From assembly GCF_021869535.1 (NCBI RefSeq), contig NW_026262712.1, positions 105,462,001 through 105,526,000 on the forward strand: 64,000 nucleotides of DNA. The letters run 5' to 3'. The DNA is from Mytilus californianus. Taxonomy: Eukaryota. Below are positions 1,064 to 46,903 of the stretch, in pieces. The position numbers and the translations under genes are program-made. The notes beneath the pieces were generated by a model, which was given only the letters and a program-made list of their open reading frames with translations, was not told the DNA's origin and searched no databases. Each line of letters opens with the position of its first letter. The first letter of the stretch is position 1.

Positions 1064-1531
1064 TTGGAATATTTTGTTTTGCGTTGGTATAGACTCTATA
1101 TTGTTAATTTACCTTTTTTGAATGGTTATGTTCCTTTGACACCATCTTACGGTGTTTATATATCACAACTCGTTCGCTATGTCCGTGACTGTTGTGACGT
1201 TTTTGATTTTAATGATTGTAATCTATGTATTACTGGTAAGTTGTTAAGTCAAGGATTTCTTTACCACAAATAATTTAAAACCTTTACTAAATTCTTCCAT
1301 AGATATAAAGATTTGGTTTTGAAGTTTGGTTGTACCTGCAGGAAACTTATTTCAAACGGGATAGCACATCCTCATTTTTACGGAGATGTTGTTTACCGTG
1401 CCCGGAAATTTAGAAACGATCCTGGTAAACTTATTGATCCTTTAAATAAACTTATTCTAAAAGGTTACCAATTCAACACTGTAATTAGATCTTTGAATAT
1501 TGTTTTTATTGGTATTAATATTGATTTTGTT
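1064..1531 (+). mobile_element. Penelope-like (Naiad-type) RT C-terminal fragment, interrupted
   Basis: LTPSYGVYISQLVRY...GKLLSQGF...KFGCTCRKLI...KLIDPLNKL matches the same C-terminus at 24490-24852 and 51170-51400 (minus). In-frame stop present. Confidence 0.8.
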
Positions 1532-1980
1532 GTAAAATTTTTATTCTAAAAATGCATAATTAAAATTCAATTATCTTTTATTTGTTTTCTATAACGATTA
1601 GCATTTACTTTTCCTTAGTGCTGGTTCCGCATGCACGATTAGAATGATACATTTTTTCTCATTGGTTCAGTGAATTTCTTATTTTACCTGGCTTGTCCAG
1701 TTCAATTGGTCCTACTGGTAATTTCTATCAGTAAAGTTTTCCTTTCAAATCACTATATTCGTATGGTCATTATTCTAATTAGTTTTCTATGAACAGGTCA
1801 TAATTTTTATTAAGTTGACGCGTCGATCGACTTAAATTTATAATTCTTGAAATATTTTAAAGTTTTTTGTTTTTCTTAATTATTTTATTTATGTTTAATA
1901 GAGTATTTCGGTACTAGTTATTTAAACTTTGTAATGAGTTCACGCGGAGTATTTTCGGTTTAGTTAATTTTATTTTTTAG

Positions 1981-3540
1981 ATGAGTTCACGCCCGCGAAG
2001 AAATCTTCCTCGACTTAATTATAAGAAATTGAATTTTCTTGGTCGTTCAGATACTACGTTTGAAAGTATTTTTCAGAATAACGTTATGGATGAAGATTTG
2101 AACCTTTCAATCACAGCTGATGACGACTTTGATGGTCTTGATCTAGAAGAAGATCCAACGGCAGGAGCCTCGTCTTTGGTTAGGGATAAGAAGGTGGAAG
2201 ATGCTTTGGTTGTTGAGAAGACCAAGGAACGACCGACCATGTCCGAGGAAGAAAGTGACGAAGAGGATTTGGAGCTTCGTCTTCAATTGTTAAAGGAAAA
2301 GCGAGATTCCCTCAAGAAGGAGAAGCTGAAGAATGACATTCGCAAATTAGAGCAGGAGGTGGAGATACTTGCTAAAGAATCGAAGACTAAGGCAGCGAAA
2401 CCGAAGAAAAAATCAGGTGAGGTTATTAATTCTAATGTTACCATTAATGATCTGAGAAAATCAAAAAAGTTATGTTCAACTGTGAAATCTCAAATGAATG
2501 CTTTAGGGCTTGAGTTAGATAGCGAACATGATCATACTGGTAAAAAAGCTAATTCTAAGTCTCAAAAAGAAGCTGTCGAAGTTGGTACGAACAAACAAAA
2601 ATTGAAACCTAAAGAAAAGATAAAGCGGAACACGAAAACAAATGCTAAATTAAAATATAGTCCAAGTTCTGATTCTGAATTATCGAACTGCGATGCAGAT
2701 TCTGAATTTGAAAAACGTTTGAAGCGTAAATTGTGGTCAAAATTTAAAAAAAGAGGGTCTTGACTGCTCTAAATTGAAAAGCAAGAAGAAGTTATCAAAG
2801 CATAAAATCAAATCTAGGAGGAATCTGAAGATTAAATCAGATTCTGATTCTGAATTTTCGAGAAGCGATTTAGATTCTGAGTTCGACTCTTCTGATTCTT
2901 CTGACTCTTCTGATTACGGTAAATATGATCGGTGTGGTCATAGTTCCAAATCCAGCAAAAACAAATCAGGGATTGTTTTAAAATCTTCAGACAAAGTGAA
3001 AAATCCTCAGTATTTTCCTCACAATTATTTACAGTTTGAATATGTAAATAAAGATTTGAAATTCAAGCAGTTGAATTTTAAACAATTTGTAGCGGGGGAT
3101 TTGGAGATAATATCTAATTTTTGTCATGATAAATATGAAAAAGAAGGCAGGTTAAAGTTACTGCAGAAAATTTCATATTTTCTGCCATTTATCAATGGTC
3201 GGCTATTTTGGACTTTTACGCTGCTTGGTTACGTCAGATGGAAATAGGCAAAAAATGTTGGAGTGACGATCCATAAGTTTTGGAGAGTGCAATTTTGACT
3301 GGTAAAGTGCTTAGTTTTGATAAAACCGACCCAAAGTTTAACAAAACCCTTTCTTCAAAATCTACGGTTTGGTTTTGTTATAAGTATCAGAGAAACAGAT
3401 GTGAGGAAAAGACAACACCGCATAATGATACGATTAGGGGGTAGTTCGATCCGTGTTACATATTAGTGCAACATGTTTACAAAAAAGTGGTACACAACGG
3501 AACCATCCGGAATGTGCTGATTTGTGTCCACATAAACGTA
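1981..3540 (+). pseudogene. gag-like ORF of YR retrotransposon (stops/frameshifts)
   Basis: ORFs 1981-2763 and 2774-3247 are K/S/D-rich with a coiled-coil. Downstream Cys/His-rich remnant WFCYKYQRNRCE...HISATCLQK...HPEC lies upstream of RT. Confidence 0.65.
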
Positions 3541-3572
3541 AATGACTATGTAATTCCGGGAATAAAAATTCT

Positions 3573-5149
3573 ATGTTTGATGGTGATCACTGTGCAATGT
3601 GTAAAGATGTTTTACTTTTAGAAGTTGGTCACACTTCTGATCTTATAGATTTACATAATCAGCTAGTTTTTACTGATTCATACAATTTTGAGTGTTTAAA
3701 GATTTCTATTTATTCTAAGTTGAATATACGATTTTGGCGTTCTCAGTTAGAGTTTTATTTTGACAAAGCAATTTGTGAATTTTGAGAGTTTGGTTGGCCA
3801 ATTGGAATAAAATATCTAGAAAATCTTGATGTTGTAGAAAAGAAATGTAGAAATCACACTGGGGCTCGGTTGTATTCAAAAGACATAGAAAAGTATATCA
3901 AGAAAGAGAAAACGTACTGTGCGGTGTTGGCCCCATTCAAAGTTAACCCCTTTTCTGATAAGTTGGTTATATCTCCGCTTAATTCTGTTCCGAAATCTGA
4001 TTCTGCCGAAAGAAGGGTCATTATGGATCTTAGTCACCCGAAGGGTCATTCTGTGAATGACTGTATTGAAAAGAATGAATATTTGGGAGATAGAGTTGAT
4101 CTTCATTATCCTACTGTTGATAAACTAGTTGACATTATTAAGAGTAAGGGTCAAAACTGCTTAATTTTCAAGAGGGACCTTCGTCGTGCTTATAGACAAA
4201 TTCCATTAGACCCAAGGGACTATAGTTTTGTTGGTTTTTCTTGGCGTAATCACATCTTTGTTGATCGTGTTTTACCAATGGGTTTGAGATCATCAGCCTT
4301 TATTTGTCAACGTATCACGAATGCAGTGACTTTTATCGCTGGAACATTGGTGTGGATGTCATTAATTATCTTGATGATTTTGCTAGGCAGACTGTCCTAA
4401 TAAAGCTCAAGTCTCTTTTGAAAAGTTGAAGAGTGTTTTGGATCAGTGTGGATTGGAAGAATCTGCGGAAAAGGCTTGTGAACCTTGTTTAAGAATGTCT
4501 TTTCTTGGTGTGTGGTTTGATACAGAGAAAATGACTTTAGAAGTTACTCCAGATCGTTTAATTGAAATTTCAGAGTTGGTTGTAATGTGGTTGAATAAAG
4601 AAAAGGCCAGAAAGAAAGAAGTGCAGTCGTTGTTGGGGAAATTAAATTTTGTCTCTATTTGTGTTAAACCAGGTCGGATTTTCAGATTTGTTTTTCTCTT
4701 GTGACGCTTGTTTGACTGGATGTGGTGGTATGTCGGGTTCTGAGTATTTTCATTGCGAGTTCCCTGAATTCATTAGGGAACACAATTTGCATATCAATGC
4801 TTCAGAGCTCTTAACAGTGATTGTTTGTTTGAAAGTCTGGGCTATTAAAGGGAAGAAAATTTGTATTTATTGTGACAATAATGTTTCAGTGCAGGTTATA
4901 AATAAGGGACGAACTAGGAGTAGAATTTTGCAGAGTTGTTTAAGAGAGCTTGTCTTTGTCTGTGCAGTGCAGCAATGTGAAATTAAGGCAATACATTTAA
5001 GTTCAAAGGACAACCGGGTCGCAGATTTGCTTTCTAGATGGAATTTATCTCCGTCCTTTCAAGAGGAATTTAAAAACTGCTTAGAATACAGTTCTCGTGT
5101 TGAAGTTAATGCTGATCCTTCTCTTTTTAGGTTTCAGCATGACTGGTGA
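3573..5149 (+). pseudogene. DIRS-type reverse transcriptase + RNase H (frameshifted, internal deletion)
   Basis: SPLNSVPK..RRVIMDLS, KRDLRRAYRQIP, LPMGLRSS, NYLDDFA (~4364-4384), FLGVWFDT; RNase H CDAC..HINASEL..CDN..NRVADLLSR. Confidence 0.92.
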
Positions 5150-5795
5150 TTTAGATCATTTAAGAGCAGAATCAAAGAATTCCATTAAAAATGCGTATGC
5201 TATTGGGACACGGAAAAATTTGAAGATTTAGTGGAAGTCTTTTTTATTATTTTGTAATTTTTACAAGTTGGTGGCTTTGCCTTGTTCGTTGGAGACCATT
5301 TGTTTATATTGTCAATTTTTAAGTCGGTTTTTTGCTAGCACAGAATCCATTAAGAATTACGTTTATGGTGTTACAAGTTTGCATTTATTTTTAGATGTTT
5401 CGCTTCCGCATTTTGAAATCCCATTGATAAAAAATCTGGAATCTAAATTATGTCCATGTTCTGCCTACATGGCTATGTGCAAACATTTTCGAGCACCTTT
5501 AAGTTCTTCAGCCTTTTTAATGCGAGGATCCCGTAAAGGCGAAGTTAAGCCTGTACGCTATAGAGTATTTAATAATTTCTTGAAACCATGCATAAATAAT
5601 ATTGATTTAAATTCGGAACACTACTCCACATATAGTTTCAGAAGAGGTGGAGCGACGTGGGCTTTTAAATGTGGTGTTCCCTCCAATTTAATACAGTTAC
5701 AAGGAGATTGGAAAAGCTCAGCTTATAAACGTTATTTAAAATATGGGTTATCAGATAAACTTATTGTTGCTAACAGTATGTCTGCTCACTGCTGA
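5139..5795 (+). pseudogene. Tyrosine recombinase (YR), internally deleted
   Basis: ATG at 5139 overlaps the end of RNase H. C-terminal motifs YSTYSFRRGGAT and IQLQGDWKSSAYKRYL; the HxxR His reads Tyr. The central segment appears to be missing. Confidence 0.9.
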
Positions 5796-5817
5796 TCTGT
5801 TTTATGTTATTTTAGGA

Positions 5818-6370
5818 CAGAAAGCGTGGAACAGGTCGACTTAGATTACAGGGGATTCTATAGTCAAATATTTCCCAGAGTTAAAGAATTCTTCAATTCA
5901 AGCTTTTGGAAGGACTAACCTCAGAGCGACTTGTCCGTAAGCTGAGCAGATCTGATTTAAATGTACATGATTTTTGTAATGTAATTATTCATGTTGGTAC
6001 AAATGATATTTTTCATTTAACTAGTGGTAAATTTAGATCGAATGTTATTTCTATCATTAATCTCATTGCTTCTGTTAACAGCAATTGTTGCATTTTGTTG
6101 TCGTCTATTTTACCTAGACCGGTTGATTACAGATTTTCAGAGGTTATATTAGGTAGTTTTAATGCAGAATTAAGGGATTTGGCGTTAAATCACAGTGATC
6201 TTAGTATTCAAAGATGTAGAATTCAATTCATGTCTTGTAATAGAACTTTTTACGATAAGTTTGGAAGACCAAAATTTCCTTTATTTGATCAAATTGACCG
6301 GCTACATTTGAATCATGCTGGCATTAATAAAATGGTTCATTTTATTGCTAATACTTTAGCTCATTTATAG
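5818..6370 (+). pseudogene. SGNH/GDSL hydrolase ORF of the YR element (frameshifted)
   Basis: Block I GDSIVK (5851-5868), block III IIHVGTND, block V DRLHLNHAG. One stop and one frameshift near the N-terminus. Confidence 0.85.
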
Positions 6371-6805
6371 ACAGTAAGTAAGAATTTTAAGGTTCGACAG
6401 GGAGGCATATTTTCTCTGACCCCTATATATATCGGGGGAGAGTTAAGTGCTTATCCTTGACCATTTATATTGGATTTTAGCAGACGGGAGGGTTACCTAA
6501 AGCTTGTCTCCTTTCTACACTGGAGGGGTTTAAGGCAGCTGACTCCCAATTCGTTAATTTTACACGATTGTTTGGCGGACCTGCGGTTTGGCGGGTTTTT
6601 TGAAAGATAGGTTTTTGTACCTTCTGTTTGAGTAAGTAACATGTACTTTTATTGTGACTGTCATTTGTTTTTGTATTGTGTGTATAGTTTATGTTGTGTA
6701 GACCTGTTAGTTTTTGAGATGCTGATCCAAGCATAATAAATGTTTTTACATACTTTTCTTTTGTTTGAAATTTGCCAGAGAGAGTTAAAAGATTGAAGAG
6801 TAATT

Positions 6806-7475
6806 ATCAGTAAATTAAAAGCAAACTAAATATTATGACGTCTTTACACTAAATCCATTTGATGTTGGATGTGTACTGATTGATAATTTAGTCTTAGATG
6901 CATGATTTTTTTTATTCGTTATTATTGGCTTTGAACTAGCTGTTAGCAACTGCGAGTACTCTCAGATCTGTACTTGGTGTCTTTTAGTTGTTGGGATGTA
7001 CAAATACCCGGCCACGTCCACTCTGTATTTTTGTTAGATGTATTTCTATTTATACCCATCTGATGAGTTAAGCCTTTTTTAACTGATTTTTATAGTTCGT
7101 TCTTATGTTGTACTGTTACACCACTGTCCCAGGTTAGGGGAGGGTTTCGGTCCCGCTAACATGTTTTACCTCACCACATTCTGTATGTATGTGCCTGTCC
7201 TAAGTAAGGAGCCTGTAATTCAGTGGTTGTCATTTGTTGCTGTGTTACATATTTGTTTTTCGTTCATTTTTTTGTACATAAATTAGGCCGTTAGTTTTCT
7301 CGTTTGAGTTGTTTTACATTTGTCTTGTCGGGGCCTTTTATAGCTGACTATGCGGTATGGGCTTTGCTAATTGTTGAAGGCCGTACATTGACCTATAGTT
7401 GTTAATTTCTATGTCATTTGGTCTCTTGAAAAGAGTTGACTCATTGGCAATCATACCATATCTTCTTTTTTATAT
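6806..7475 (+). mobile_element. Penelope-like 3' end (last codons ISKLKAN* plus 3' terminal region, family A)
   Basis: Homologous to 24835-25550 and 50820-51190 (minus). Ends ...CATACCATATCTTCTTTTTTATATT. Confidence 0.8.
7130..7215 (+). ncRNA. Degenerate twister-like ribozyme (type P5)
   Basis: GAGGG and CCTG-TCCTAAGT-AAGG are present, but the cleavage-site UAA reads TAC and P4 has a mismatch. Confidence 0.55.
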
Positions 7476-7579: not shown

Positions 7580-8894
7580 CCTGCAATGGTTCCTGTCTAC
7601 ACGTGACTCCAACGTAGGAATCAAGCCATACTTTACACTCAATGTTGTCTCCCCATCCGGAACATTGACTGATCGGTCGCGTTCAAAGAACAATGCGCAT
7701 TTTCCATCCAAAATGGATTCCCATACTGATGTGGTCTACGGAAAATTGGCTTATTTTCATATGAATTTTGTGGTTCCCCTCCATGACTAAAATATAAAAT
7801 TGTCTAGGTACGTGTTTATATCTGAAAGCAGTTTAAAAAGTTTTAAACATCTATATCTGCATTTGCCATTGATTTTTTTTATATATGATACGCAAACTAC
7901 GTGATCACAATAGCTTGTTTAACAAAACTATATTAATTACAACTATATCGATATTTTTTTTCAGAATTTGTATATGCATTCCAACCTGGTTGGCGATACA
8001 ATAAAAGAAAGATAAAAAAGTAAAGATTACATACGGATATCCAAGAGACCGACATAAAACTGCAGCTTCTATAGTTGTAAATCCACTGACGCAGATAGCT
8101 CCCCATTTATGTTTGTGAAAAACTTCAATCATTCCTCCTCCATTTGTTGTGGATGTAACTAGGCGTACAGGAGTTACACTGGATGCTAAGATTGTAATAT
8201 TCATGATTATTTTAGATCAGAGTTTAAGCTAAAGTCTCATTTGTGGAAATACTGAATTTAAACAGCTATCCATGCATTATTTAGTTAAAGCTGGAATGAT
8301 CGCAATCACACATTGCCAAGTTCCCTATATATAGAAGTCCCTATTGAACAGGAATTGTTTAAATTGGACATAGTGTAGTTTGTGTTCATATGGTTGAAAG
8401 GCCTATTCATTTAGTATGGCATTAAACAATTGTTTTCTTTTAAAGAAAACTAATTCTTATTTGTAAAGTCTAATGCAACAGTTGTTTCCAAACAATTTTT
8501 TTTTTTAAATCCATTGCTACAAAATTTTCATAAAACAATCCTAGTTCTTCCCAAAAAGAACTAATGTGAACAAACCTCAGGTGAAAAAAAATGCATAAAA
8601 AAATATTGAAATGTTTTCTTCATTATATTCTAAGGATATGACTAATTAACTAGTTTGATTCTTACCATTCACGTGGACTTCGAACAGCCGTTGCAGCCTG
8701 ACATCTTCAGTAACTGTCACGCGGCACCTGTAAAGTCCAGAGTCTGTAGTCTTTGTTTGTTTGATGACAAGTTTACTAATATAGCGACCTCGGTTATAGC
8801 GATCACGTGTCCATTCTTTTTGTCGTATCAGATATTTTGCGCCTTCACTGATTAAGGTGAAGTTTTCAGTATTTGTATTGGACATCTTTTCCCA
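7580..8894 (-). pseudogene. Ig-domain + SRCR-domain gene fragment (exons 8894-8666, 8185-8035, 7735-7580) with a frameshift in the third exon
   Basis: Canonical AG/GT sites with compatible phases (0-1, 1-2, 2-1 only if +1 shift). Ig motif WEK...DSGLYRC; SRCR motifs VRLV..G.IEVFH..KWGAIC...AAVLCRSLGY, FWMENAHC, QCSGWG...VGVTC. Confidence 0.8.
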
Positions 8895-9660: not shown

Positions 9661-10233
9661 AAGTCTAAATTGAAAACAACGTTCAAACCTATGAATGCGT
9701 TGGATAAAAACCGTAATTTTTATACGTGTGCATGCAAAACAAATTTCTTGGTAGAGGGGTCTAAATACAGCACAAACAACATTTTCCAAAAGACCAAATG
9801 AGTGAAAAAGTATATTTTAACAAAACGCATTTGACTAGCAGGTCGAACAACTGATGTTCTTAAACCCTGCTGACTGCCATTGGCGATTGCCAAATAAACG
9901 GATCACAAGATGTAGCAAAACAGATCTTATCATTAAATTATTACCAAACAGAAAACAATAAACTTGCGGAAAAGATGGTATACCGCAAACATGAGGTGCA
10001 AAAAATTTGTACACCATATCCGGATTTCGACAATTAATGTCTCTTCAGTGATGTTAGGAATCGAAACGGTATTTGGAAGGCCATATAATTTACCTCAATT
10101 TAGGATAGACTCTTGAATTTTGAAAGAGTCAAAATAGGATGAACGGATCATATAAACCCGAAGGCAAATATAATACAAGCCCAAACGAAAAAATATAAAC
10201 AAGTCTAAATTGAAAACAACGTTAAAACCTATG
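9661..10233 (-). mobile_element. 540-bp hammerhead-containing repeat unit with terminal direct repeat
   Basis: AAGTCTAAATTGAAAACAACGTT(C/A)AAACCTATG at 9661 and 10201; internal hammerhead at 10011-10054. Confidence 0.65.
10011..10054 (-). ncRNA. Minimal type-I hammerhead ribozyme
   Basis: ACATCA-CTGAAGA-GACA-TTAAT-TGTC-GAAA-TCCGGA-TA-TGGTGT: intact core, stems I and II pair, palindromic stem III, AUA cleavage triplet. Confidence 0.85.
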
Positions 10234-10396
10234 TTTTTGATGACGCAGGTGTCAGTACCCCACTGGCGCTTGCCCCCGTTGTAAAGGGATAGTTTCAAAA
10301 TAATATATATATATATATTTTTTATTTTGAAACTACCCCTTTACAACGGGGGCAAGCGCCAGCGGGATACTGACACCTGCGTCATCAAAAACATAG
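10229..10396. repeat. 168-bp palindrome / MITE-like foldback with (TA)n loop
   Basis: ~75-bp near-perfect inverted arms CTATGTTTTTGATGACGCAGGTGTCAGT... / ...ACTGACACCTGCGTCATCAAAAACATAG. Confidence 0.85.
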
Positions 10397-10704: not shown

Positions 10705-11250
10705 TATCTAAAAGATGGACGAAAGATACCAGAGGGACAGTAAAACTCATAGATCGAAAACAAACTGACAACGCCATGGACAAAAATAAAAAGACAAACA
10801 GACAAATAATAGTACAGATGACACAACATAGAAAACTAAAGACTAAGCAACACGAACTCCACCAAAAACTTGGGGTGATCTCAGGTGCTCCGGAAGGGTA
10901 AGCAGATCCTGCTCCACATGTGGCACCCGTCGTGTTGCTTATGTTATTACAAATCCGGTAAATAGTCTAATTCTGTAAGTCACATTCGTGAAAAGGGAAG
11001 GGTATTGTAGTTACGACATAAGGAACATATCCGATATCATCTGTGAAACGGTTATTCCATAACTATCAACCAACTCGTGATGGCGTCCGTAAAATTTACG
11101 AAGGGATGATTTCAACTTCACCATTTGGAACTCTTGGCTTAATAGCTTCCTTGTGAGCAGCAATCCCCTATCAAGGAAATCATGATAGGAAACACAAGCC
11201 CGGGAATATCGTATCAATTGGGAGATATATACTCCGTATGCAGGCGCTAA
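10705..11250 (-). mobile_element. Penelope-like (Naiad-type) RT C-terminus + 3' end (family B)
   Basis: PAYGVYISQLIRYSRAC...RKLLSQEF...LRKFYGRHHELVDSY* followed by a 3' region also found at 25625-25860, 44561-44745 and 55700-55915. Confidence 0.85.
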
Positions 11251-12093
11251 ATGAATATGAATATCTAAACTATTACCTAAGTCTGTAGAATACAAGTAAC
11301 CCAGATCACCTGATCACAGATGAACAACAAATAAATGAGGCATACATGAGTTCTGAACAACAGGTAACTGACATCCTAAACTCACATGCACCCATTAATA
11401 CAAGAACGCACAGAAAGAAACCACTGCCATGCATGAACAGCGAATTAAGAAAATATATTTATCGCAAACTTATGCTCTATACAAATTATACAAAACAACG
11501 AAACAGTAAGACCTGGGAAAAATACCGTAAACAAAGAAATTTGGTAAACAAACTTAAGAAAGACTCTATGAAAACTTATTTCTTAGAGAGATGTGCAGGC
11601 GGATCAAAATCAAGCGATTTTTGGAAATGTATAAAACCCTTCTTATCTAAGAAATGTAAAAATGTAAACCAAACCATCGTACATACAGAAGGTAACAACA
11701 TACTAAATGACACAAAACAGGTAGCAGATACTTTTAACACCTTTTTCTCTACAGTAGCAGACTCTATTAGAAATGACACCACATATAGAAAAGAAAATCA
11801 TCCAAGTATTCAAGAAATTGAAAAGAACCGAGACCAAGAAGTAAATTTTGAATTTGAAAAAATAACACCTGACAAAATTGACAAGATCATGAACAAAATA
11901 AACATTAAAAAGGCTACAGGAGCTGATGGAATTCCAGCTAAGGTTGTGAAGCTAAGTAAGTCTGTCATGGGGCCTCAAATTACAACACTTATAAATACAA
12001 CAATTGAGTATGGGGTATTCCCTATCAGACTTAAAGAAGCACAGGTCACTTCAGTATTCAAGAAAAATGATGCGCTTCCAAAATCCAATTACA

Positions 12094-12641
12094 GATAGAT
12101 ATAAGAAGAGTCAATGAGACAACTCTCCATCCAAGTCAAAATTTATAAAAGTAAACCATTATAGGTCAAAGTACGGTCTTCAACACGGAGCCTTGGCTCA
12201 CACCGAACAGCAAGCTATAAAGGGCCCCAAAAATTGCTAGTGTAAAATCATTCAAACGGGAAAACCAACAGTCTAATCTATATAAAAAACGAGAAACGAG
12301 AAACACTTATGAACCATATCAACAAACGACAACTACTGAACATCAGATTCCTGACTTAGGACAGGTGCAAACAATTGCAGCGGGCTTAAACGTTTTAATG
12401 GTACCAAACCTTCACCCTTATCTGAAACAATAGTGTAACATCACAACATAGAAAGACACACTATAAAATATCAATTGAAATGGCTTAACTCAATCAAAAG
12501 ACATATTAACACCAGTGAACATACACTGAACAAATAAATTTGATCTATGATACAATGTAAATACAAAATAAATAAACTAAGGGGAGAATAATAAAAGTAA
12601 CATGTTATACCGCTGTGAAATGTTAAACAATTTAAGTTTAA
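12094..12641 (-). mobile_element. ~550-bp twister-containing repeat inserted in the LINE RT
   Basis: Splits NYR/PVSV codons of the LINE. Near-identical family copy at 50035-50545 and partial copy at 48060-48260. Confidence 0.85.
12332..12434 (-). ncRNA. Twister ribozyme, type P5 permutation, core intact
   Basis: ACTATTG..CAGAT-AA-GGGT-GAAGG-[pal,pal]-TAA-GCCC-GC-TGCAA.TTGCA-CCTG-TCCTAAGT-CAGG-A-ATCTG..CAGTAGT. T1 CCT/AGG, T2 GC/GT. Predicted cut between 12388 and 12387. Confidence 0.75.
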
Positions 12642-18338: not shown

Positions 18339-20839
18339 TCAGTATTAATCTCGGGGAGGAAAGGGTGGGTGGGTGGGGGGGGGGATACTTTCTATAAATA
18401 TACAATGTGATAGGACGTGCCGCTGGAATAGGTCACATTTTTCAGATTGAAAATATGTGAATAGGTGGGGACAACTATCAGAAATATATGATAAGGTCAA
18501 TGAAGTTCCCATTACTTGTTATATGAAAAGCCCTGTGTTTTTTTACAGCCAAAAGTCTCGCTGTAAGTTAATATAAGAAATCTGAGCGTCAGATATGAGC
18601 CTCGCTCTGAGCAAAGGTGATATTTCTCTATTGTGCCGGAATGTGATTCTCGCCGGTTTCAGGACACAAAATTTTAAATCATCACGTACAATGACGTCAC
18701 TTAATTCTGCGCTTGTATTTTCCGAGGTATTTTCAAAGGCCATTATTGGAATCATGTCTTTCACCGGAAAAGATCGTCAATTCCGCACGCCTTTATGGCG
18801 TCATTTACCGGATAGAAGGCGCGCCTGTCTCTCTGCTCTATTAAAGTTTCAAGCACTTTCAGAATCGTCATTCTGCACGGTAATCTAGAAATAATTTATG
18901 TTCCGTAAGTACGTAATCTTAATTCTGAAGGGAGGGTGACTAACTTATTAGATTTTAATTTCCCAAATAATTTGTGCAGTATAAGATCAAACTTTTTCAC
19001 CCGTTTGCTCAACATGTGTTGGAAGTGACAATGCCTACATTTTGGTCACGTGTTGATGGAAGTCACATGACAGATTCAACTAACTAACGTATCCCGGAAC
19101 TGGCGTATTGTAAACAACATGAAGGATTTTAGAGGGATTTTCTGAGGAAAATGTGTTAACTTAAAACTATGATGAATGTCAAGAATTTGAAGGAAAATGC
19201 AGATGTGACTATTGTGACTGTGCTACTACTAAGCATTTGCCTACAAATTCTTCAAATGGTGAATCTGTCATCTTTCTTGTTGTTCCCGGCTGTGTTTTTA
19301 TCTACAAATGTTTTCCCTTTCGAGACTTTGGTATTCCACTTTTTCAACACACCGCACAAAACCAAACCAAACCAATATGGGAAAAGGTTACATTTTTACC
19401 TATGCCGCAATATATGAAAAGGTATACATTTATAAAATCTAAATTATATGAAAAGGGTGGGGTAACAGAATCCCAGAAGCACCCCCTATATATTAAGTAT
19501 TGTAGTGAAAAAAAAAGAAAAAAAATCAAACGAGCTTTTCTGTATTGATCAGGTCGGATATATTTATCAGGGCATAATTTAATAGGGAGACCCATGGTGG
19601 TGAATTACTTACATTCAACAACTACAGGATGGTTTTGATTTAATTCCTATATCATCAACTTTGTCATTACAACAAGAACCTATCAGTGTCGGAATACAGC
19701 AGTATTAGCCAATGAACATAAAACAAACTGATTGTATCATGGCATAATTTTACCACAAAATTTTTTATCAGATATTCGGAATCCTCCCGTTATATCCATG
19801 GTGTGCATATAAAAATTTGCCTACTAACCCTTACTTTTTTTATTATTTTGTTACATATAGTTTTAAAAAGCCATTTTTTAAAATTCTAATAAAATCCTTT
19901 TTATTTTAGCATTGTTTTTTAAAGAAAAAGGTGTCAATGTTTATAAAGAGAATTATTTCCCGTCAAATTTTCATTTGATCATATCTCAAAAACAAAAACC
20001 TTTCGTATTTTCTGCTTTTTAGTTTCCGTTATTCATATTTCTCTGGATCATGCCACTCGGTTTTTTTTTCTTGATGACCACACTTAGTCGATTTTTTTTT
20101 CTTTACTGGCCGCTTGTGGAATCACTCAGAATGCAATTTACGTTTAACAGTTTGTTTTAAAAAAGGTCAATCAATGCTCTCATTAATAATATTAGTAATT
20201 TCCGATAAAGATTTACGCAGCGTGAAAAAATTCTCTTGTCCCTGTAATGAAAAGATTTTAGACTGCTGATTTCCGACTAAAGATCACATACGACTATTTT
20301 CAATATCACTCCGATGTTCATACCTCTTTAAAAAAACTGTATACGATGTATACCTTGTTTGATGCCGGTCAATGTAACTTTTTCTGTCACCTGCATCATT
20401 TAATGCAGCAAGAACAGATCTCAATTCTTTTCCCTTGCGACCCATTTTGTTTACATTAGCTACAACGTAAATGCAGATGACTGTGACGCCATCACGCACG
20501 TGTAACATGACAATAAAATTAAGAATGGAAATGGGGAATGTGTCAAAGAGACAACAACCCGACCAAAGAGCAGAAAAAAGCCGAAGGCCACCAACGGGTC
20601 TTCAACACAGCGAGAAAATCCCGCACCCGGAGGTGGGCTTCAGCTGGACCCTAAACAAAAATGTGTATTAGTTCAGTGAAGATGGACGCCATACTAAACT
20701 CCAAAACATATAAATGAGCACAGGTATTTTCTACAGAACTACATATATATATATATTGATTGCTATTCCGATTGTGCCATGGAGACGACGGTTAAAAATT
20801 TGTTTAACCTTCCGTGACGTGACAGTCATTGTTATTTTT

Positions 20840-23390
20840 ACGACTTCTTCTGAACAGGTTGTATCAGAAACAACAAGAGAAAACAAAATTATAGATTTAT
20901 GTTTCACCATCTACCCTAATCTTATAAAGAAAGTAGAAGTAGAACCAGGAATAAGCGACCATAACCTTGTTAAGATTACTATAAATACAAATGCAAAAAT
21001 TCATAAAAAAACCGCCTAGGAAAATATACATGTATGAAAAGGGGAACATGGAAGGTATAAGATCAGACCTAAGATCAAAACTTGATAAGTTCAAAGAAGA
21101 CAGCAACAAAGAAGGTGTAGAAACATCATGGACAAACTTCAAACACCTTGTTACAGAATCAATTGAAAACAACATACCATCAAAGCATACTACCACGAGA
21201 TGGAATCTTCCCTGGATGACAACAGAAACTAAACAAATGATAAGAAAGAAACAGAGACTTTACAACAAAGCCAAAAAATCAAACGATAAGCAACACTGGA
21301 AAGATTTTAAACTTTATAGAAAAAAGTAAAAGAGCAACTACAAAGCAACCACGACCAATATGTCAAAGACATTTTGACACCAGAAGAACCAACAAAAGCA
21401 CATACAGACAGTTGCAGAGAACAAATATATGCTACAACCAATAAATTTTGGTCGTATATAAAAGGTATGAAAAAGGACAGTAGTAACATCAGCATGCTTA
21501 ATAAGAATGGTAAGGACATCATACATGCAGAAGAAAAAGCAAACATCCTTAACCAGCAGTACGAATCAGCATTTTCTGATATTGATTTTAACCAGTACTT
21601 AGACATACGATTCTATACAGATGTTGAATTTAGACTACCAAAATACCAAGACCTATTGTACACATGAAACCAATAAATATGTCGTTACCTGGAATTATCA
21701 AACAGCTGAAAAATATAAATCCTAACAAAGCAACAGGACCTGATCTGATTCCCTGCAGAGTCCTGAAAGAGACAGCAGAACAAATAGCACCATACTTGAA
21801 GGTAATATTTAATAAATCCATCAAATTAGGAACAGTACCATCAGACTGGCTCATCGGTAATGTCATCCCGATTTTTAAAAAGGGCGATAAAACAGATCCA
21901 GCAAATTACCGTCCTGTCTCTCTTACATCTGTCCCTTGTAAAATTATGGAGCACATCATCTTTAGTAGCATTATGAACTACCTGGATGACAACAAACTCC
22001 TGTCATCATACCAGTATGGATTCAGGAAAAACCACTCGTGCGAACAACAGCTTATAAACACCACGGAGGATCTAGCTAGAATAAGAGATAATAAAAGCCA
22101 AGAAGATATACTGATACTGGACTTCAGTAAGGCCTTCGATACAGTGCCACATCGCCATCTTGTACACAAACTCAGAAACAAGGGTATTGATAAGTACAAA
22201 GTAAATTGGATAGATAACTGGCTCCAAAATAGAAAACAGACAGTTCTCCTAGACGGCTGTAAATCACAACCTGCAACCGTACTATATATATATCCGGAGT
22301 TCCACAAGTTACCGTACTTGGCCCTCTTCTATTTTTGCTATACATCAATGACATTGGGGATAATTTAACAACTGGTACTAGCATAAGACTCTTTGCAGAT
22401 GATTGCTTATTATACAGAGACATCAAAAGTCATAATGATACACAAATATTACAGAAAGACTTAACTGAATTAGAAAAGTGGTCTATTGATTGGAACATGT
22501 CATTTAATCCATAGAAATGCTACGTTCTACAGACAACACATAACATCCGTAATAGAATTATAAGACCATACTTCTTACATTCTACAAAGCTGGAACTAAA
22601 AGAACATAACCCATACCTAGGGGTGGAGCTAGACAGCAAGCTCAATTGGAACCATCACATTACCTAAAAAATTAACAAAGCTTCACAACAACTGAATTTT
22701 GTTAGAAGAAATTTATATAGATGCCCTCAAGAAATTAAACAACACGCTTACATTGCTCTGGTTAGACCACATCTGGAATACAGTAGCTCAGTATGGGACC
22801 CCCATTGAAAGAAGGACATCAAACGTATAGAAATGGTACAACACAGGGCGGTAAGATTTGTAACCATGGCTACAACTACCAACCCGGCTCTATGACCGCA
22901 ATTATACAATCTTTGAATTGGCCTACCCTTGAAACGAGAAGAACAGCAAATCGCTTAATATTATTTCAGAAAATACTGTATCACCAAGTAGCCACCGAAA
23001 TTCCCAAATACAACCTCGTCAACAACGAGAAAACACGTCATAGCCACACAGTCAGCATCATGCAGCCACAATGCAACACCTCCGAATACGAATTCAGCTT
23101 CTACCCGAGAACAATCCGAGACTAGAACCATCTACCAGGAAACATCGCAACTGACACCGACTCGGACACTTTCAAGGAAAACCTCTGGTCACACTTCAAT
23201 CCCGAGACCAGAGATGCTGTAAAGATCATCCTTGTTTTTATCCTGCACCGACCACAATTTTAAAATTGTATATATTAATTTATTGTTTCGGTTTTGTTGA
23301 TCACAACTTGTACAGCACCTGCACTTGATGACACAGCATCAGCGTGATGGTATTTTTTCGTTGCTGATTAACGAAAGAAGAAAAGTACGT
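20840..23390 (+). mobile_element. 5'-truncated CR1/L2-group LINE, multiple frameshifts
   Basis: Endonuclease end IDLCF...GISDH; RT KATGPDLIP, NYRPVSLTS, LDFSKAFD, LFADD; C-terminal FSFYPRTIRD; GAA-rich tail. Confidence 0.88.
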
Positions 23391-24149: not shown

Positions 24150-24484
24150 GTTGATTCATTTTCATTACTAAGGTTTTTGTGTATTGAAGGTGTTATATGA
24201 TCTAGTAACCATGTATGAATATTAATTAAAAAAATATAGACTAAGGCAATAGGTCACACTTTCTTCGTCCAAAATCAATTATGAAAAAGCCATCTACATA
24301 AAAATAAAGATGATGCATGATTTGACAATCTCGCAACTATTCATACCCCAAAAGGACACATATGTAAACAATTAAAGATCACCGTTACGACATTCAACAA
24401 TGAGCAAAGCCCATACCGTTTTTCAGGTATGATAAAGTGTAAAATAATTGAACAGAAGTAATCAGCGGACTTATTTATACCCAA

Positions 24485-25550
24485 CGTCTGTTGTGACGTT
24501 TTGGATTTCAATGAACGTAATCTATGTATTACTGGTATAATATCAAGTCAGGGATTTCGTTACCACAAATTACTTAATACCTTTACTAAATTCTTCCATG
24601 GATATAAAGATTTGGTTTTGATGTTTGTTTGTACCTGTAGAAAACTTATTTCAAACTGGATAACACATTCTTTTTTTTACTGAGATCTTGTTTACCGAGT
24701 CCGGCAATTTCGATACGATCCGGATAAACTTATCGATCCTTTAAATAACCTTTTTCTAAAAGCTTACAATTCAAAGCTAAGATCAGATCTTTGAATATTG
24801 TTTTTATTTGTATTGATATTGATTTTACTATCTGTAAATTAAAATCAAACTAAATACTAATTATATATATATATCTGCACATTCATGGCTCTAGAATATG
24901 TTGATACCTGTACATTGTATCTTGGCTTTGTACATGTGATGTTTTTTTCTCTGACTGTTTATGACGTTTTTACACTGAATCCAATGGATGTTGGATGTGT
25001 ACTGAATAATGTTTTAGTCTTAGATGCACGATTTTGTTCATTAGTTGTTAGTGTCTTTCTGTTGTGTGGATGTATAAGTACCCGTCCATGTCCATTCTGT
25101 TTTTTTTGTTAGATGTATTTCTATTTGTATCCATCTGATGAGTTAAGACTTTTTTCAACTGATTTTTATAGTTCGTTCTTATGTTGTACTGTTACACCAC
25201 TGTCCCAGGTTAGGAGGAGGGTTTGGCGCCATCAAACTAGTTAACCCCGCCACATTCTGCAAGTGCCTGTCCCAAGTCAGGAGACTGTAATTCAGTAGTA
25301 ATCGTTTTTTGCTGTGTATGATATTTGTTTTTTATTCATTATTTTGTACATAAATTAGGTCGTGAGTTTTCTCGTTTGAATTGTTTTACATTTGTCGTTT
25401 CGGGGCCTTTTATAGCTGACTACGCGGTATGGGTTTGGCTCATTGTTGAAGGCCGTACGCGTACGGTGACCTATAGTTATTAATTTCTATGTCATTTAGT
25501 CTTCTGTGAAGAGTTGTCATATTGGCAATCATCCCACATCTCCTTTTTTA
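24485..25550 (+). mobile_element. Penelope-like (Naiad-type) RT C-terminus + complete 3' end (family A)
   Basis: DFNERNLCITG..SQGFRYHKL...CTCRKLI...ICKLKSN* then a 3' region containing a twister fold. Ends ...CCACATCTCCTTTTTTATAT. Confidence 0.85.
25196..25299 (+). ncRNA. Twister ribozyme, type P5 permutation, core intact
   Basis: CAGGTT-A-GGAG-GAGGG-[TGGCGCCA, AACTAGTT]-TAA-CCCC-GC-CAC..GTG-CCTG-TCCCAAGT-CAGG-A-GACTG. T1 CCC/GGG. Predicted cut 25242/25243. Confidence 0.72.
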
Positions 25551-26838: not shown

Positions 26839-29800
26839 TTACAAATCAGTTGAATGTGTCCTAGTTGTTCGACTGATTGCATATATAGCGTTGGAGTTTG
26901 GTGTTGAAAAACGCAGTTTGCCTTTATACAAAGATACTGTTTTTCTATTACATATAAATGAGACGAATATAAACACTCCTTGAAGTGCATTTAAGAGCCA
27001 CACAATCAAAGAAAATGCATTTTCTTGAAGAGATGACGGTAAAAAAGATTCAGCTATTTGGAAAATCCACGTTATTCCGGTTATCGTAAATAGTTTGACG
27101 TAAACAGTGAACTGAGTTCTATTTGGTCCAAGCTGTTCATCTGTTACCCTGCAACTAGAAGCAATAGTTCTAGCAGTGAGTGAGAACAAGGCTACATTAC
27201 TACAACATACAAGAACAATAGGTGCCATAAATGTGATAATGATAGATATTTGTTGATTTAAAAAACACACGTGTCCACCATAACCAATCGCGTTGTCACT
27301 ATGAACAATGGACGTTAATCCAACGTTGCAAGAAACAATCAAGAAGGGCACTCCATAAGAGTATAACACATACAGAAGAATGGTTCTTGTTTGCTTGGCA
27401 ATTTCATTTTGGTGTCTAGTAATGCAGATACTGCTAAACATACGATACATATGAAATGAACATACATTCAAACATCCAAAGGTAGCTAACCACAAGTAGT
27501 GTATCAAAATTCCAATAACAAAACAGAGTGTCTTATTGGTTGTTTGGTATAATCCAAATTGATAGATAGAATGAGAACAAAACATTGCAAACACTAATGA
27601 CATGTTGATTTTTCCTGGTAAGGTTCGCAGTGACGGAAATATCAAATACGTCAAAAACGTCAAAAATAAACATACTAAGGAGATACAAGTACAAATCATC
27701 AAAACAATTCCAGAAACATCCTTATATATGTTTGATTCGCTCTCTTCTTTAATGAGCCATTCGTAATCTTCCTTACAGATTCTTGCGCCAATTGACGGTG
27801 TTATAATATATTTAATAGGACTTAATTTCTTCCTTGAAAAGCCGACAATTAAATTACGTGTCTCATTTTCTACGCTGAATTCTGCATCTTTCAGGTCAAT
27901 CTGTTTACAAATAAGCAGCTCCGATACTAATATATACGTTTTCATCCTGGCACCTTCTTCTGAATATATATAACAGGTTCCATTCAAATGGGATGTTTTG
28001 GATGTATCTGGCAACAGTAAAGGGTAATACTGCTCTGTTACTGTAAACTTATAAATAAAATTCCCATGTAAAATGTCAATTGTTGAGTTAGTCAGTTTTA
28101 ATAAATTTTCTTCAACCTGTGTCCGATTTACATGCATGAACAACGGAAATGACATCTTCAGATAAATTGATAAGCTAATGTTTTTTCCTCTTTCAAATGT
28201 TAACTCGTCCGAGCATGAAGATCTAAATTTCAAAATAAGAAGGTCTTGCTGGAAAGAAGCCGTAATATTGGTAATGTGTGATATGAAGCTGACCTTAACT
28301 ATTTGTAAGAATTCCGCACTAGTTACATTGTCGTTGAATATAACTCCTTCCAACCCAAGTGTAAGAATATATCCCAGACCATACGTTATTTCTAGCAGTG
28401 GAACGCATACATTCTTTCTTAATACTCGTCCGGGAAAACAAGTCAGGTCTGAACAAGTATGCTTCAAAAAAAATATATATATTATCAACATATTTCTTTT
28501 TTGTAAGTTTGATAATTTATGAGTATTAATAAATTAGGCTGGATTTCATTCGCTAATATTGGAAAAGACGCGGATTGAAATGAAATTTACCAGACAAAAG
28601 TCCTGTCGGTGTCCTTTGAAAATAAAAATAACACTTAATAAATTAGTTGTATTCAAACTGCTTTCTTGATTTATCTTCATCAGGAACGCCCAAAGCCAAA
28701 CTTTGAAAGCAAAGGATGTGTAAGACCCGAAACACTTATTTGACGTATCATTAGAGGAGCCCGAAATCAATAAGCTGAAAACAACACAACTACACTACCC
28801 ATGATGATCCCTATGCAGCAACTAAAACCAGACAACTTTACTATATCTGAGGACCCTTGTATAAAGAATATAAATTTGTTATAAAAATCGGATTTGTAGC
28901 TTCATATATGAGATTTCCTATCCGTTGCTTACAGACACTAAATTTAGAATATCCTAATACCCTACAAACAGACATGAATGGCTATTATTGTTTTGCTTAA
29001 GAGAAAAGAACTGTAGAAATAACAAAGATGAACGCCTAAAGTAGTAGCCCACTGTAGCGTCACTCTTATATCTTAAACGCTTTTGAGCGGAGAGGCATAG
29101 AAATAAACCAAATCCAGCATGACTTTTCCTATTACCAACAGAAAAAAAGACAAATTTCCAAGAAGAGTTAGAATCCTAATTTTCAAAACTATAAACTTTG
29201 GTGGATAGTTGTCTCATTTGCAATCATACCACATCTCCTTATTTTTATAACATAAATAAAAACAAAATATTACCATAATAGAGTTGTAAAATTGGTCCTG
29301 TCTGCACTCCTTCTTGAATATTTTGTCTGTAGATGTTCTTTCGTAGTTTAAAAGAGAAAATAAGACACGATACGTAGGTTGGAAAATGTAGGTGGGATCG
29401 ACAATGTCAGAACCATTGGTGTTTTTAATTTCAAAATGTATGTCTATACTGATATCGTCTGCTAAATTTTCATGTGGATTGTTACATTCTTTACAAAATA
29501 CATTTTTATAAGGGGCATGATATTCTATTTCAGGAAGATTAATGCAGTTTTTCAAAGCATACTCGTTGTACAGGAGTTCTGGCCACATTCCAGTTTGATT
29601 ACAAGTAGTATACACAATTTCTGTGTTAATTTCAGGATTACATATTTTGCAGAATGGATTTTCACCATTTTTTGGTACGACTAAACGTTCACATGCCCAT
29701 CTGATGTTATAGTCTAACTTTTGCAATTTTCCTGTAGAATTACATTTACTGAAGCTTTTATCTCCACACTCAACAGTATTACCTGATGGTTTAAGATCTA

Positions 29801-31517
29801 TTGTACATTTATTTTTCATCGCAAATTTGAAATATTCCTGTAAAGAAATATGAATGACATACGGAATATATGTTCTGCAAGAAATAGAAAATTTCCATAT
29901 TTCTATATCATTTGTAATCTCCTCCTCTATGAACGTTACGTTTATTTCTTTATATTGGCATAAATAGCAAAAGATATTTTTGAATGGAATATCATCTTTA
30001 ATAAATTTCACTGGTAAAATGTTCAACAGGTTCTGGTTAGAGTTCTGTTTACAAAGCATGTGTAACCGAGACTGTGGAAAATTGGAACAATCATCATAAA
30101 CTATATATGTTTTCCTATTCAGTGAGTATTTATCCAAAGTGCAGGTTTTACTAGGCTCAAAAAGTTTGTCAATGCAACAAGGATTAAAATATGACCGATG
30201 TCTAACGCTACAATGGACATCGCAGTCACAGTTCTCTAGTTCTGTAAACGTTGAGTAGTTTTTACAAAATAATTCACGTCCAGAAAATGCCAAGTACTTA
30301 GAATATATGTCTAACAAATCATCTATGTACATGTCTAATTGGCTTGAGTTTGAAAAATCATCCAAAGGTTTAGTAAGAAAATGTACCAAAGATTCATTAA
30401 CATAACTGGAATATTCAATGTCCGAATTTTTGGCCAGCGTGTAAAGTATATATTTCAAATTTAATTTCTTAATTTTGAATAGATATTCGAACTGACCATG
30501 TGTTTCTACATCATACGTTACATCAATAAAGTTATACTGCGTTAGTTTGTCATTGTTTCTATTACAAAAGTAACAGTATATATTCTTGAAGTTACCTATT
30601 ACTTGAGTTCTTGGTGTTTCAAGACATAGCTTTTCCAGCTCTAGATCATATGGGTGCCACAAACATGTATCATTGCAATTCGAAATATAATGGTCACCAT
30701 ACAGGGGTGGATTACAAAGATAACAAAAAATGTTTTTGAAGTAATCAAAATTATGATCGTAAGTCTGACATGCGTGATCTATGTCTGAATCGTATGATTT
30801 CCATGTGCCAGAAATGTTACATGAATTAATCCCATAGAAGAGCCTCGAGTTTTCAATGCTGCATGATCTGAGATTCAATTCTTTCGTTGAGTCTTTTATA
30901 TAGGCTATACTACAATTATTATCAATCGAAACATTATAAAGGTCATCATATGATGACATGAAATTAAAATCTACTGACTGGCGGCAATCAATACCAATTC
31001 CCCATGCCAATAGATCTTCTGGAGTCTCTTTGTGACAGACTGAACAATAATTGTTCCTATACGTTAGACCTGTTTTCAATGATGTCAGGGGCATATTTCT
31101 AATAAGGTTGTTCCAATTATCCTCAACATAACATACATTACGATCATTTTCAATGGAACCTTGTGGACAAGATGTGACCATTAAAACGGAAGGATTTCTA
31201 TATTTGTTGATGCTGATTGGATAATTATTGTTTACGTTCCACCACAATCCTTTAAGTATACCTGGATTTACACATGAAATATTGAGTGCATAAAATACTT
31301 CAGGACAACAGTTGCCATACTGAATACACCTAATGTTACAACTGCATAAAGGACAAAGACCAAACTTTCCCATAACAAATGAAGATCTGCTCGTTTCACT
31401 GCTACTGCAACTATAATGTCCACACATTGACGAATATTGTATCATAATCTGTGTTATGTTCAATAAATTAACTGAATTAAACACCAGTAATGGAAAGAGT
31501 CCTCTTATTAAAATCAT
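26839..31517 (-). CDS. Cys-rich-ectodomain 7TM receptor (Methuselah-like / secretin-adhesion family B type); coding exons 31517-29274 and 28461-26839, ~1288 aa
   Basis: Polypyrimidine-AG at 31538 precedes ATG 31517 and a signal-like N-terminus. Phase-0 GT (29273) / AG (28462) joins ...FYNSIM-HTCSDLTC. Seven hydrophobic helices with LRTLPGK, HYLWLATF, C-F-L (ECL2) and NALQGVFIF motifs. No stops. Confidence 0.88.
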
Positions 31518-39189: not shown

Positions 39190-39600
39190 TATTGTTGAAA
39201 AAAGGTTATTTGATCATTGGAGATTTAAAACTCATCACGTCTGTCGTAGATAATAGTTTGAAGTAATCCATCTGAGTAAATATCAAGGAAAACATCAAGA
39301 CATGAAGGATATTTTCTTTTTTCAGTAGAATCGGTAATATCAAGTTCATTGGGATATATCATAGGCAAGCACTGATCATCAATATATCGGAAAGTGAAAT
39401 AATGTAAATTCTGCTTCATACGAAAACAATAACAAGTCGGTCAGTAGGGGTGAACTATTCTAAAATAACCATTGGAATACCGACTGTCTGTTGAAAAATC
39501 ATTTCGCCAAACTCAACAAGTATGTTGTCTATAAAAAATGCCAGCAGTTTGATGGCGTGGGTGTTGTTGAAATCGCTTTAGTTCTTCACAAAGTCAGATT
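39190..39600 (-). mobile_element. Penelope-like RT fragment
   Basis: FQQTVGIPM...FTFRYIDD...YPNELDI...LDVFL...IYDRRDEF. Confidence 0.8.
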
Positions 39601-46835: not shown

Positions 46836-46903
46836 CTTACACCCCAGTTCTATTGTTATACTTCATAGTTTCTATTTCTGAAACAAGTGTAAATTGAATA
46901 GAT

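Follow-up and report, generated by a model that had tools for sequence, protein, structure and literature searches.

We analysed a 64,000-nucleotide (nt) stretch of Mytilus californianus DNA (contig NW_026262712.1, positions 105,462,001 to 105,526,000 of the forward strand; hereafter the window), an AT-rich (~33% GC), repeat-dense piece of eukaryotic DNA in which copies of a short module resembling a twister ribozyme of type P5 lie downstream of remnants of retroelement open reading frames (ORFs). A sequence-only reading of the window had listed six copies of the module and several relics, and all six copies were found at the positions and on the strands that it had assigned to them. A covariance model (R1) was built from a MAFFT alignment of these six copies only, with nested pairs only, and a search of the window with filters off returned 11 copies in total (Table 1). 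The founding copies were recovered at 58–108 bits (E values of 3e-26 to 6e-13), and the five further matches, which are the decayed copies and relics of Table 1, had E values of 8.5e-18 to 4e-4. Every relic named before was among them, and the one that had been given as 59010/60362 proved to be a single copy split by an insertion of ~1.3 kb. BLAST comparison of the extended copies separated two superfamilies, SF1 (copies starting at 12332, 50284, 25196, 7120, 56680 and 37266) and SF2 (42520, 45551, 51425, 43722, and 60309 with 58915), which share 68% column identity inside the module and no detectable similarity outside it. Copies within one family are simply homologous, and their number is not evidence of structure.

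The genomic copies are mostly decaying, and the copy at 12332-12434(-), referred to here as the focal copy, is the best preserved in the window. All of its canonical pairs are intact (P2 4/4, T1 3/3, T2 2/2 and P4 4/4), with the sequences GCCC/GGGU in P2, CCU/AGG in T1, GC/GU in T2 and CCUG/CAGG in P4. Its minimum free energy fold recovered P5, P2, P3 and P4, with a z score of -3.45. When the copy was mapped onto the Rfam twister consensus GAGGG, G12413 fell at the position of the general-base G, and the cut that had been placed at 12388|12387 follows from our parse as the predicted site. At 43434-46068 there is a 98% identical inverted duplication with two retroelement 3′ ends, one arm of which has lost 108 nt, the 5′ half of a twister included.

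Table 1. Copies and parts of the module, ORF remnants in the window, and homologous modules in loci of other assemblies
Feature	Position	Strand	Remarks
Focal copy, SF1, complete P5-open twister-like module	12332-12434	-	R1 107.9 bits
P5 outer helix, 5′ strand ACTATTG	12428-12434	-	partner 12332-12338 (CAGTAGT)
P5 inner helix, 5′ strand CAGAT	12420-12424	-	partner 12344-12348 (ATCTG)
P2, 3′ strand GGGT	12414-12417	-	partner 12382-12385 (GCCC)
L1, 3′ strand GAAGG	12409-12413	-	T1 strand AGG at 12409-12411
Segment in place of P1	12389-12408	-	without P1 complementarity
First palindrome, TGGTACCA	12399-12406	-	
Second palindrome, AAACGTTT	12388-12395	-	
L1, 5′ strand UAA	12386-12388	-	predicted scissile bond 12388/12387
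T2, 5′ strand GC	12380-12381	-	partner 12354-12355 (GT)
P3 hairpin, TGCAA/TTGCA	12366-12379	-	
P4, CCTG/CAGG	12350-12365	-	8-nt loop L4 TCCTAAGT
L4, T1 strand	12358-12360	-	
L4, conserved AA	12356-12357	-	
L4, T2 strand	12354-12355	-	
SF1 copy	50284-50385	-	89% identity to focal copy; one C.A mismatch in P2
SF1 copy	25196-25299	+	canonical GGAG-GAGGG; T1 CCC/GGG; ~370 nt downstream of ORF remnant 24486-24826
Decayed SF1 copy	7120-7227	+	UAA changed to UUA; P4 mismatch
SF1 relic	56680-56773	+	diverged 5′ half
Decayed SF1 relic	37266-37369	+	R1 match
SF2 copy	51425-51518	+	T1 ACT/GGT; P2 CCAC/GTGG; one C.A in P4
SF2 copy	45551-45648	-	downstream of inverted duplicate of ORF remnant 43050-43511
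SF2 copy	42520-42611	-	T1 ACC/GGT
SF2 relic	43781-43841	+	R1 match 43722-43841; 3′ half only, 5′ half gone in 98% inverted duplicate of 45551
SF2 relic, 3′ half	60309-60409	+	5′ half at 58915-59073
Retroelement ORF C-terminus remnant (reverse transcriptase family)	24486-24826	+	same strand as twister; tblastn
Other remnant of the ORF family	1088-1543	+	tblastn
Other remnant of the ORF family	43050-43511	+	tblastn
Other remnant of the ORF family	58157-58342	+	tblastn
Other remnant of the ORF family	10954-11379	-	tblastn
Other remnant of the ORF family	39228-39589	-	tblastn
Other remnant of the ORF family	51188-51363	-	tblastn
L002 module	6172-6280		ORF end 5909; two more copies in inverted orientation
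L003 module	1375-1482		ORF end 1070
L004 and JGI duplicates			degenerate module copy
L018 module	7788-7898		ORF end 7530; canonical GAGGG and UCCCAAG

The structure was assessed in a MAFFT alignment of 13 sequences, comprising both superfamilies of the window and modules from four other assemblies, which was not fitted to any structure. Twenty pairs of P2, T1, T2, P3 and P4 were compared with 500 shuffles and with slid pairings. The results showed that 87.5% of the cells over the 20 pairs were paired, compared with 69.5 ± 1.8% in the shuffles, none of which reached this value, and 31–42% in the slid pairings. Changes on both sides were found in 15 of the 20 pairs (10.4 ± 1.5 in the shuffles, 0/500 reaching it), and the covariation score was 0.543 against 0.221 for the shuffles; a 12-sequence version of the covariation count was also made. 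Furthermore, the two pseudoknots behaved in the same way when taken alone, with 86.2% of the T1 and T2 cells paired against 74.9 ± 3.3% (0/500) in the shuffles and 11–42% in the slid controls. T2 was paired in 96.2% of cells, with the forms GC/GU, GC/GC, CC/GG and AC/GU, and its first pair was kept in 13/13 sequences (five GU, four AU, two CG and two GC). T1 was paired in 79.5%, with both-side changes in two of its three pairs and the correct register throughout, in the forms CCC/GGG, CCU/AGG, ACC/GGU and ACU/GGU. The sequence-only reading had named CCC/GGG, CCT/AGG and ACC/GGT for T1 and GC/GT and AC/GT for T2; each of these was present, and T1 also occurred as ACT/GGT and GCC/GGT.

Among the nested helices, P2 was paired in 80.8% of cells, with both-side changes in two of four pairs and the forms GCCC/GGGU, GCCC/GGGC, ACUC/GAGU and CCUC/GAGG; SF2 fits this helix only in a shifted register. 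P4 was paired in 94.2% (both-side changes in three of four pairs), and in P3 all seven pairs had changed on both sides. RNAalifold, run without a template, predicted P3 and P4 on all 13 sequences and P2, P3 and P4 on seven. The two-part P5 was counted in a second alignment that leans to the structure of its covariance model; in this fitted alignment the outer part was paired in 94.8% of cells with both-side changes in four of seven pairs, the inner part was paired in 80.5%, and P5 as a whole had both-side changes in 9 of 14 pairs. The four P5 forms described earlier were present as well. The claim of covariation was thus borne out for the nested helices and for both pseudoknots in alignments not fitted to structure, other organisms included.

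The outside sequences came from an HMMER search with a 91-aa piece of the ORF, which yielded 616 relatives, the contigs of some of which gave loci from other assemblies. We found that R1, which knows the window copies only, detected the module downstream of the homologous ORF and on the same strand in four of these loci (L002, L003, L004 and L018), at 195–305 nt from the ORF. The L002 module matched R1 without any non-standard pair. Pairing was kept in the outside modules through P4 forms of AUCG/CGAU, ACCG/CGGU or GCCG/CGGC and P2 forms of ACUC/GAGU or GCCC/GGGC, and their P3 was wholly different from that of the window and still paired; T2 was CC/GG in L003 and L018 and GC/GC in L004. Ten JGI loci were counted as one lineage because they represent the same genomic locus in many samples, and one metagenome scan gave two loci, neither of them informative. 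The Penelope-like copy with the most canonical twister, in L018, sits inside a Gypsy-type long terminal repeat (LTR) retrotransposon (L018:4715-10176), with gag and protease upstream of it and reverse transcriptase (RT)-RNase H and integrase downstream.

Conserved nucleotides were compared with the Rfam twister-P1 consensus and with the Schistosoma twisters (PMC8501958), and all strongly conserved twister positions were either kept or compensatorily changed. Against the Rfam consensus, the module keeps the UAA, the GC after P2, the C-G opening P3, the U, middle C, A-A and G of L4, the A residues before the P2 3′ strand and the G-A-G-G-N; the last L4 base varies in step with its T2 partner. N-A-A (N = U, G or C) immediately precedes P2 in every well-preserved copy and in every outside lineage. 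Of its two A, the second (alignment column 60) never varies, and the first, just 3′ of the predicted cut (column 59), is kept except in relic 7120, which has UUA, and in copy 51425, which MAFFT places one column off. L4 follows the pattern U-NNN-A-A-G-N, with the U, the middle C and the AA invariant and the G nearly so. G-A directly follows the P2 3′ strand in all copies except that of L004, and relic 7120 retains it displaced in the alignment by a 1-nt deletion. One or two A of the L2 3′ strand immediately precede the 3′ strand of P2, and the one at column 25 is nearly invariant; P4 is followed by a purine and then by the inserted P5. The catalytic G and A had been called invariant, which holds for the six main copies and fails in relic 7120, which has T in place of the A on the 3′ side of the cut, and in L004. 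Collectively, a twister-like double-pseudoknotted fold is conserved on the sense strand of the element's 3′ untranslated region (UTR). The earlier assignment to twister type P5 is supported by these data, given the covariation of pseudoknots and helices, the conserved nucleotides in their places and the twister clan as the only ribozyme family to appear in Rfam scans.

We then considered the element that carries the module. ORFs at 1046-1546 and 24462-24680(+) are remnants upstream of two SF1 copies, and remnants of the same family lie upstream and on the same strand for SF1 and SF2 copies alike. Copy 7120 is downstream of remnant 1088-1543, from which a 5.3 kb insertion separates it, and the 5′ half of the split SF2 relic begins ~570 nt downstream of remnant 58157-58342. 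Because SF2 copies too follow such remnants, both superfamilies are best read as 3′ UTR tails of one retroelement family. The sequence-only reading had assigned the module to several divergent repeat families, which did not stand as separate families, all being tails of one Naiad-like Penelope-like element (PLE) family and short derivatives of it. The 12332 and 50284 copies share 5′ and 3′ ends ~490 nt apart and therefore represent a short non-autonomous derivative. A third copy of this ~490-nt short element, at 48076-48256(-), starts inside the 3′ strand of P5 and consists of the tail without the ribozyme; this start differs from the predicted cleavage site. The module follows the stop codon at a distance of 195–520 nt, and ~250 nt remain from it to the 3′ end of the element.

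Searches of Pfam and Atlas with the 91-aa ORF fragment gave no identification. The ORF family is very large (>7,000 relatives). Relatives of the ORF carry RT motifs and end ~100 aa later without a C-terminal endonuclease domain (GIY-YIG). RVT_1 and HTH_animal matches were found for the family, and the nearest Atlas clusters carry HTH_animal, RVT_1 and GIY-YIG. Upstream of the twister, the selenocysteine insertion sequence (SECIS) family SECIS_1 matched above its gathering threshold (35) at L002:5884-5951 (37.4 bits), where it overlaps the ORF stop, and at L003:1093-1155 (36.4 bits), 22 nt past the stop; none was found in the window itself. A SECIS right after the stop is the published layout of selenoprotein-encoding clam Naiad PLEs (PMC8557442), so the L002 and L003 elements are probably such Naiads. 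Bivalve genomes are dominated by Naiads, which number tens of thousands of copies and, unlike other endonuclease-bearing PLEs, lack canonical hammerhead ribozymes (PMC8557442); no hammerhead family of Rfam matched the window at E ≤ 10. These features suggest that the host is likely a Naiad-clade PLE. The assignment stops short of proof because every copy, in the window and in the fetched loci, is 5′-truncated, and the N-terminal GIY-YIG with its CxC linker that defines Naiads would lie outside them.

On this basis we propose that the module is a twister-class self-cleaving ribozyme of the rare P5-open permutation, also carrying P3. Its place would be the 3′ UTR, on the sense strand, both of Naiad-type PLEs and of the short non-autonomous elements derived from their tails. 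In the fold shown by covariation, the two-part P5 clamps the ends, P2, P3 and P4 form, and the 8-nt P4 loop docks on G-A-NNN to form T1 and on the dinucleotide that follows P2 to form T2, which completes the double pseudoknot. By analogy with known twisters, the G after P2 (G12413 in the focal copy) may act as general base, the general acid would be the A on the 3′ side of the cut, and the RNA would be cut between U12388 and A12387 to leave a 2′,3′-cyclic phosphate and a 5′-OH; this predicted cut is drawn from the twister U-A site (PMC8501958, PMC6154101). Its role may parallel that of the hammerhead in the 3′ or pseudo-LTR part of other PLEs, namely the processing of read-through or tandem transcripts. 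The twister-class fold, the Naiad-like host and active master copies, taken together, form a reading that we hold to be probable, and for the activity of the master copies by itself we lean towards a yes.

In addition to the 5′ truncation, several observations weigh against the proposal. Kinship among the sequences can beat shuffles without any structural constraint, and a relaxed Python descriptor of the twister architecture was unspecific, with 0.42 matches for each simulated 64-kb window when both strands were counted; only two real copies passed it. A single match therefore means little, and the case must rest on covariation, for which the counts of both-side changes and the slid controls are sturdier evidence than the shuffles. 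An Rfam scan of the whole window gave no twister match at gathering or at E ≤ 10, and neither the focal 171 nt alone nor the L018 copy gave a match. Targeted scans gave 19.3 bits (E 0.032) with Twister-P5 on 25213-25281 of copy 25196, where gathering is 37.6, and 26.1 bits (E 0.084) and twice 20.8 bits with twister-P1 on the L002 copies, where gathering is 67.2. Thus the Rfam twister models run with cmsearch, which had been suggested as a check, matched well under gathering and did not confirm the assignment. The low scores are explained by the models themselves, of which that for P5 includes a short P1 hairpin and lacks P3, and that for P1 places the G-A-G-G-G strand at its 3′ end; the twister clan was the sole ribozyme family to appear in the targeted scans. 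A chance likeness, in which an amplified repeat matches a loose twister pattern with no selected structure, would agree with the unmet gathering thresholds, the descriptor matches in random sequence and the identity by descent of family copies. We regard it as extremely improbable, since pairing was kept through both-side changes between SF1 and SF2 and in four other assemblies, and dropped to 11–42% in the slid controls.

Further objections come from the architecture itself. The canonical P1 is missing, the bases after G-A-NNN not being complementary to those before N-A-A. In SF2 the sole good 4-bp P2 (CCAC/GUGG) consumes the AC required by T2, so that either P2 is reduced to 2 bp or T2 is absent, and the P2-T2 stack is two layers short. 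A canonical parse forced on SF2 was rejected, as P2 and T2 compete for the same bases. The claim that all copies fit a single template therefore needs correction for the SF2 copies 42520, 45551 and 51425, which have no clean fit, the AC being shared by P2 and T2. L002 and L003 have U.U as the outermost pair of T1, L004 has no proper GAGGN strand, and a T2 pair is weakened to G.U in most copies. P1 is dispensable for cleavage (PMC6154101; PMC11662667), and high-throughput data showed that G.U wobbles in the pseudoknots, L1 insertions and any base at -1 are tolerated (PMC11662667; PMC6154101). By comparison with these published tolerance data, SF1 and L018 look compatible with activity and SF2 is doubtful.

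The last point against the proposal is that inserted copies run ~250 nt past the predicted cut, meaning that RNA uncut at this site was copied into the genome. Since inserted copies span both sides of the cut, cleavage is not obligatory for the RNA that is reverse transcribed. This would suit a conserved, structured 3′ UTR element that has the twister fold and has lost, or never had, the ability to cut, such as an RT recognition or priming structure of ribozyme descent. The absent P1, the T2 mostly weakened to G.U and the low Rfam scores point the same way, and covariation demonstrates structure, not catalysis. We nevertheless consider such a non-cutting element unlikely. The positions that matter for catalysis or the active site only (A-A after the cut, G-A after P2 and AAG in L4) were kept where all helices had changed, the deviations seen are tolerated by natural twisters that have been tested (PMC11662667), and hammerhead-bearing PLEs likewise insert with the ribozyme internal to the copy (PMC8557442).

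The place of P1 is taken by a segment of 20–24 nt between G-A-NNN and N-A-A, which in most lineages contains two palindromes at fixed positions and of variable sequence. Two palindromes of at least 6 nt were found in 7 of the 13 sequences, as against 1–6% of shuffles; examples of the segment are window 12388-12408(-), L002:6200-6220 and L018:7816-7836. The first palindrome occurs, for example, as TGGTACCA, TTGGCGCCAA, ATGGCCAT, GGTGCACC, GGTCGACC, TAGCTAGCTA and TGGCATGCCA, and the second as AAACGTTT, AACTAGTT, AACATGTT and AACCGGTT. Perfect palindromes without a spacer form poor hairpins, which makes pairing between RNAs a natural reading, and the sequences suggest that two RNAs pair as a dimer or that the T1 strand takes part in a conformational switch. 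A rather unlikely extension of this is that Naiad PLEs swapped the hammerhead for a twister active only as an RNA dimer or tandem. The palindromes would then pair between molecules, release the T1 strand from a local hairpin that competes for it and turn cleavage on, yielding unit-length and possibly circular RNAs as in retrozymes. Alternatively, the palindromes might be the selected feature, as a dimeric binding site at the DNA or RNA level or as a dimer linkage, with the twister-like part secondary. Their fixed positions and variable sequence across most lineages would fit such a role. They are also compatible with a ribozyme working as a dimer, and the covariation in P2, P3, P4, T1 and T2 and the conserved loop nucleotides would be left unexplained, which makes this alternative very improbable in our view.

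Among the closest known systems is the type-P5 twister ribozyme, reportedly described by Roth et al. in 2014. Like the Rfam family (RF02684, clan CL00120), the module reads P5 strand, A-rich L2, P2 strand, G-A-NNN, closed P1 side, N-A-A, P2 strand, GC, P4 hairpin with a U-CCC-AAG-C loop and P5 strand, with both pseudoknots, and the best Rfam match, on copy 25196, was to this family. It differs in having a P3 hairpin, which the 58-position Rfam P5 model lacks, and in having two palindromes in the 20–24 nt segment and no P1 helix; furthermore, its last L4 base is usually U (T2 G.U or A-U) and not C, and its T1 is often CCU/AGG or ACC/GGU. A P5 stem is found in only ~1% of annotated twisters (PMC6154101); in the Mytilus DNA a very abundant repeat would bear this form. 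The twisters and T-variants of Schistosoma mansoni, borne by the RTE element Perere-3 (PMC8501958), share UAA, a 4-bp P2, GC, P3, P4, UCCCAAG-Y and GGAG-GAGGG. Copy 25196, which reads GGAG-GAGGG ... UAA-CCCC-GC-P3-CCUG-UCCCAAGU-CAGG, has the Schistosoma order opened between P4 and the P2 3′ strand. Both are multicopy and carried by retrotransposons. The Schistosoma twisters, however, belong to type P1 and occupy the 5′ end of a non-LTR element, where their cleavage sets the RNA 5′ end (PMC8501958). The Mytilus module is opened at P5 and found ~250 nt before the 3′ end of a Penelope-like element, in its 3′ UTR. The hammerheads of PLE pseudo-LTRs (Cervera & de la Pena 2014; Lunse et al. 2017, cited in PMC6765202) resemble the Mytilus module in host class and in 3′/pseudo-LTR position, and differ in their unrelated ribozyme fold. 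Minimal variants of these hammerheads cleave as dimers (PMC6765202), and the palindromic segments of the module suggest that here, too, two RNAs pair.

RTE elements are known to carry twisters at their 5′ end (PMC8501958; PMC7761336) and PLEs to carry hammerheads (PMC6765202). A literature search of incomplete scope found no report of a twister in a Penelope-like element, and a 2024 survey of type-P1 twisters counts bivalves among its new taxa with predicted examples and does not mention retroelements (PMC11662667). If the proposal is correct, a ribozyme would be a general requirement of these elements and the ribozyme class would be interchangeable. In bacteria, twisters and hammerheads share gene neighbourhoods, and interchangeability in PLEs would echo this. 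Next to Perere-3, a second concrete biological setting would be known for eukaryotic twisters, and the permutation that is now the rarest among twisters would rank with the most abundant. A cut site predicted to the nucleotide would also offer an easy experimental handle. Current Rfam twister models miss this whole population.

Other features of the window were recorded alongside the module. The 5.3 kb insertion at 1529-6804(+) divides a PLE copy (1088-1543 / 6805-7475), and its ORF pieces match RVT_1, the RNase H-like RVT_3, weakly Phage_integrase, and a GDSL-like hydrolase; judged from these domains it looks like a DIRS/Ngaro-type tyrosine-recombinase retroelement. A degraded RT of the long interspersed nuclear element type (RVT_1, FADD motif), unrelated to the twister-bearing element, lies at 20500-23300(+). 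At 10229-10396 we found a near-perfect palindrome with 90-nt arms and sub-threshold matches to plant microRNAs (MIR8670, 85 bits against 150), which is most likely a hairpin resembling miniature inverted-repeat transposable elements and not a microRNA gene. Arrays of a ~34-nt tandem repeat lie on both sides of a 140-nt inverted repeat (48406-48744) within 46662-48916. A 550-aa ORF at 26839-28491(-) contains a secretin-family seven-transmembrane receptor domain, and with its neighbour, an 838-aa ORF at 29214-31730(-) that has no Pfam match, it may represent exons of a host gene.

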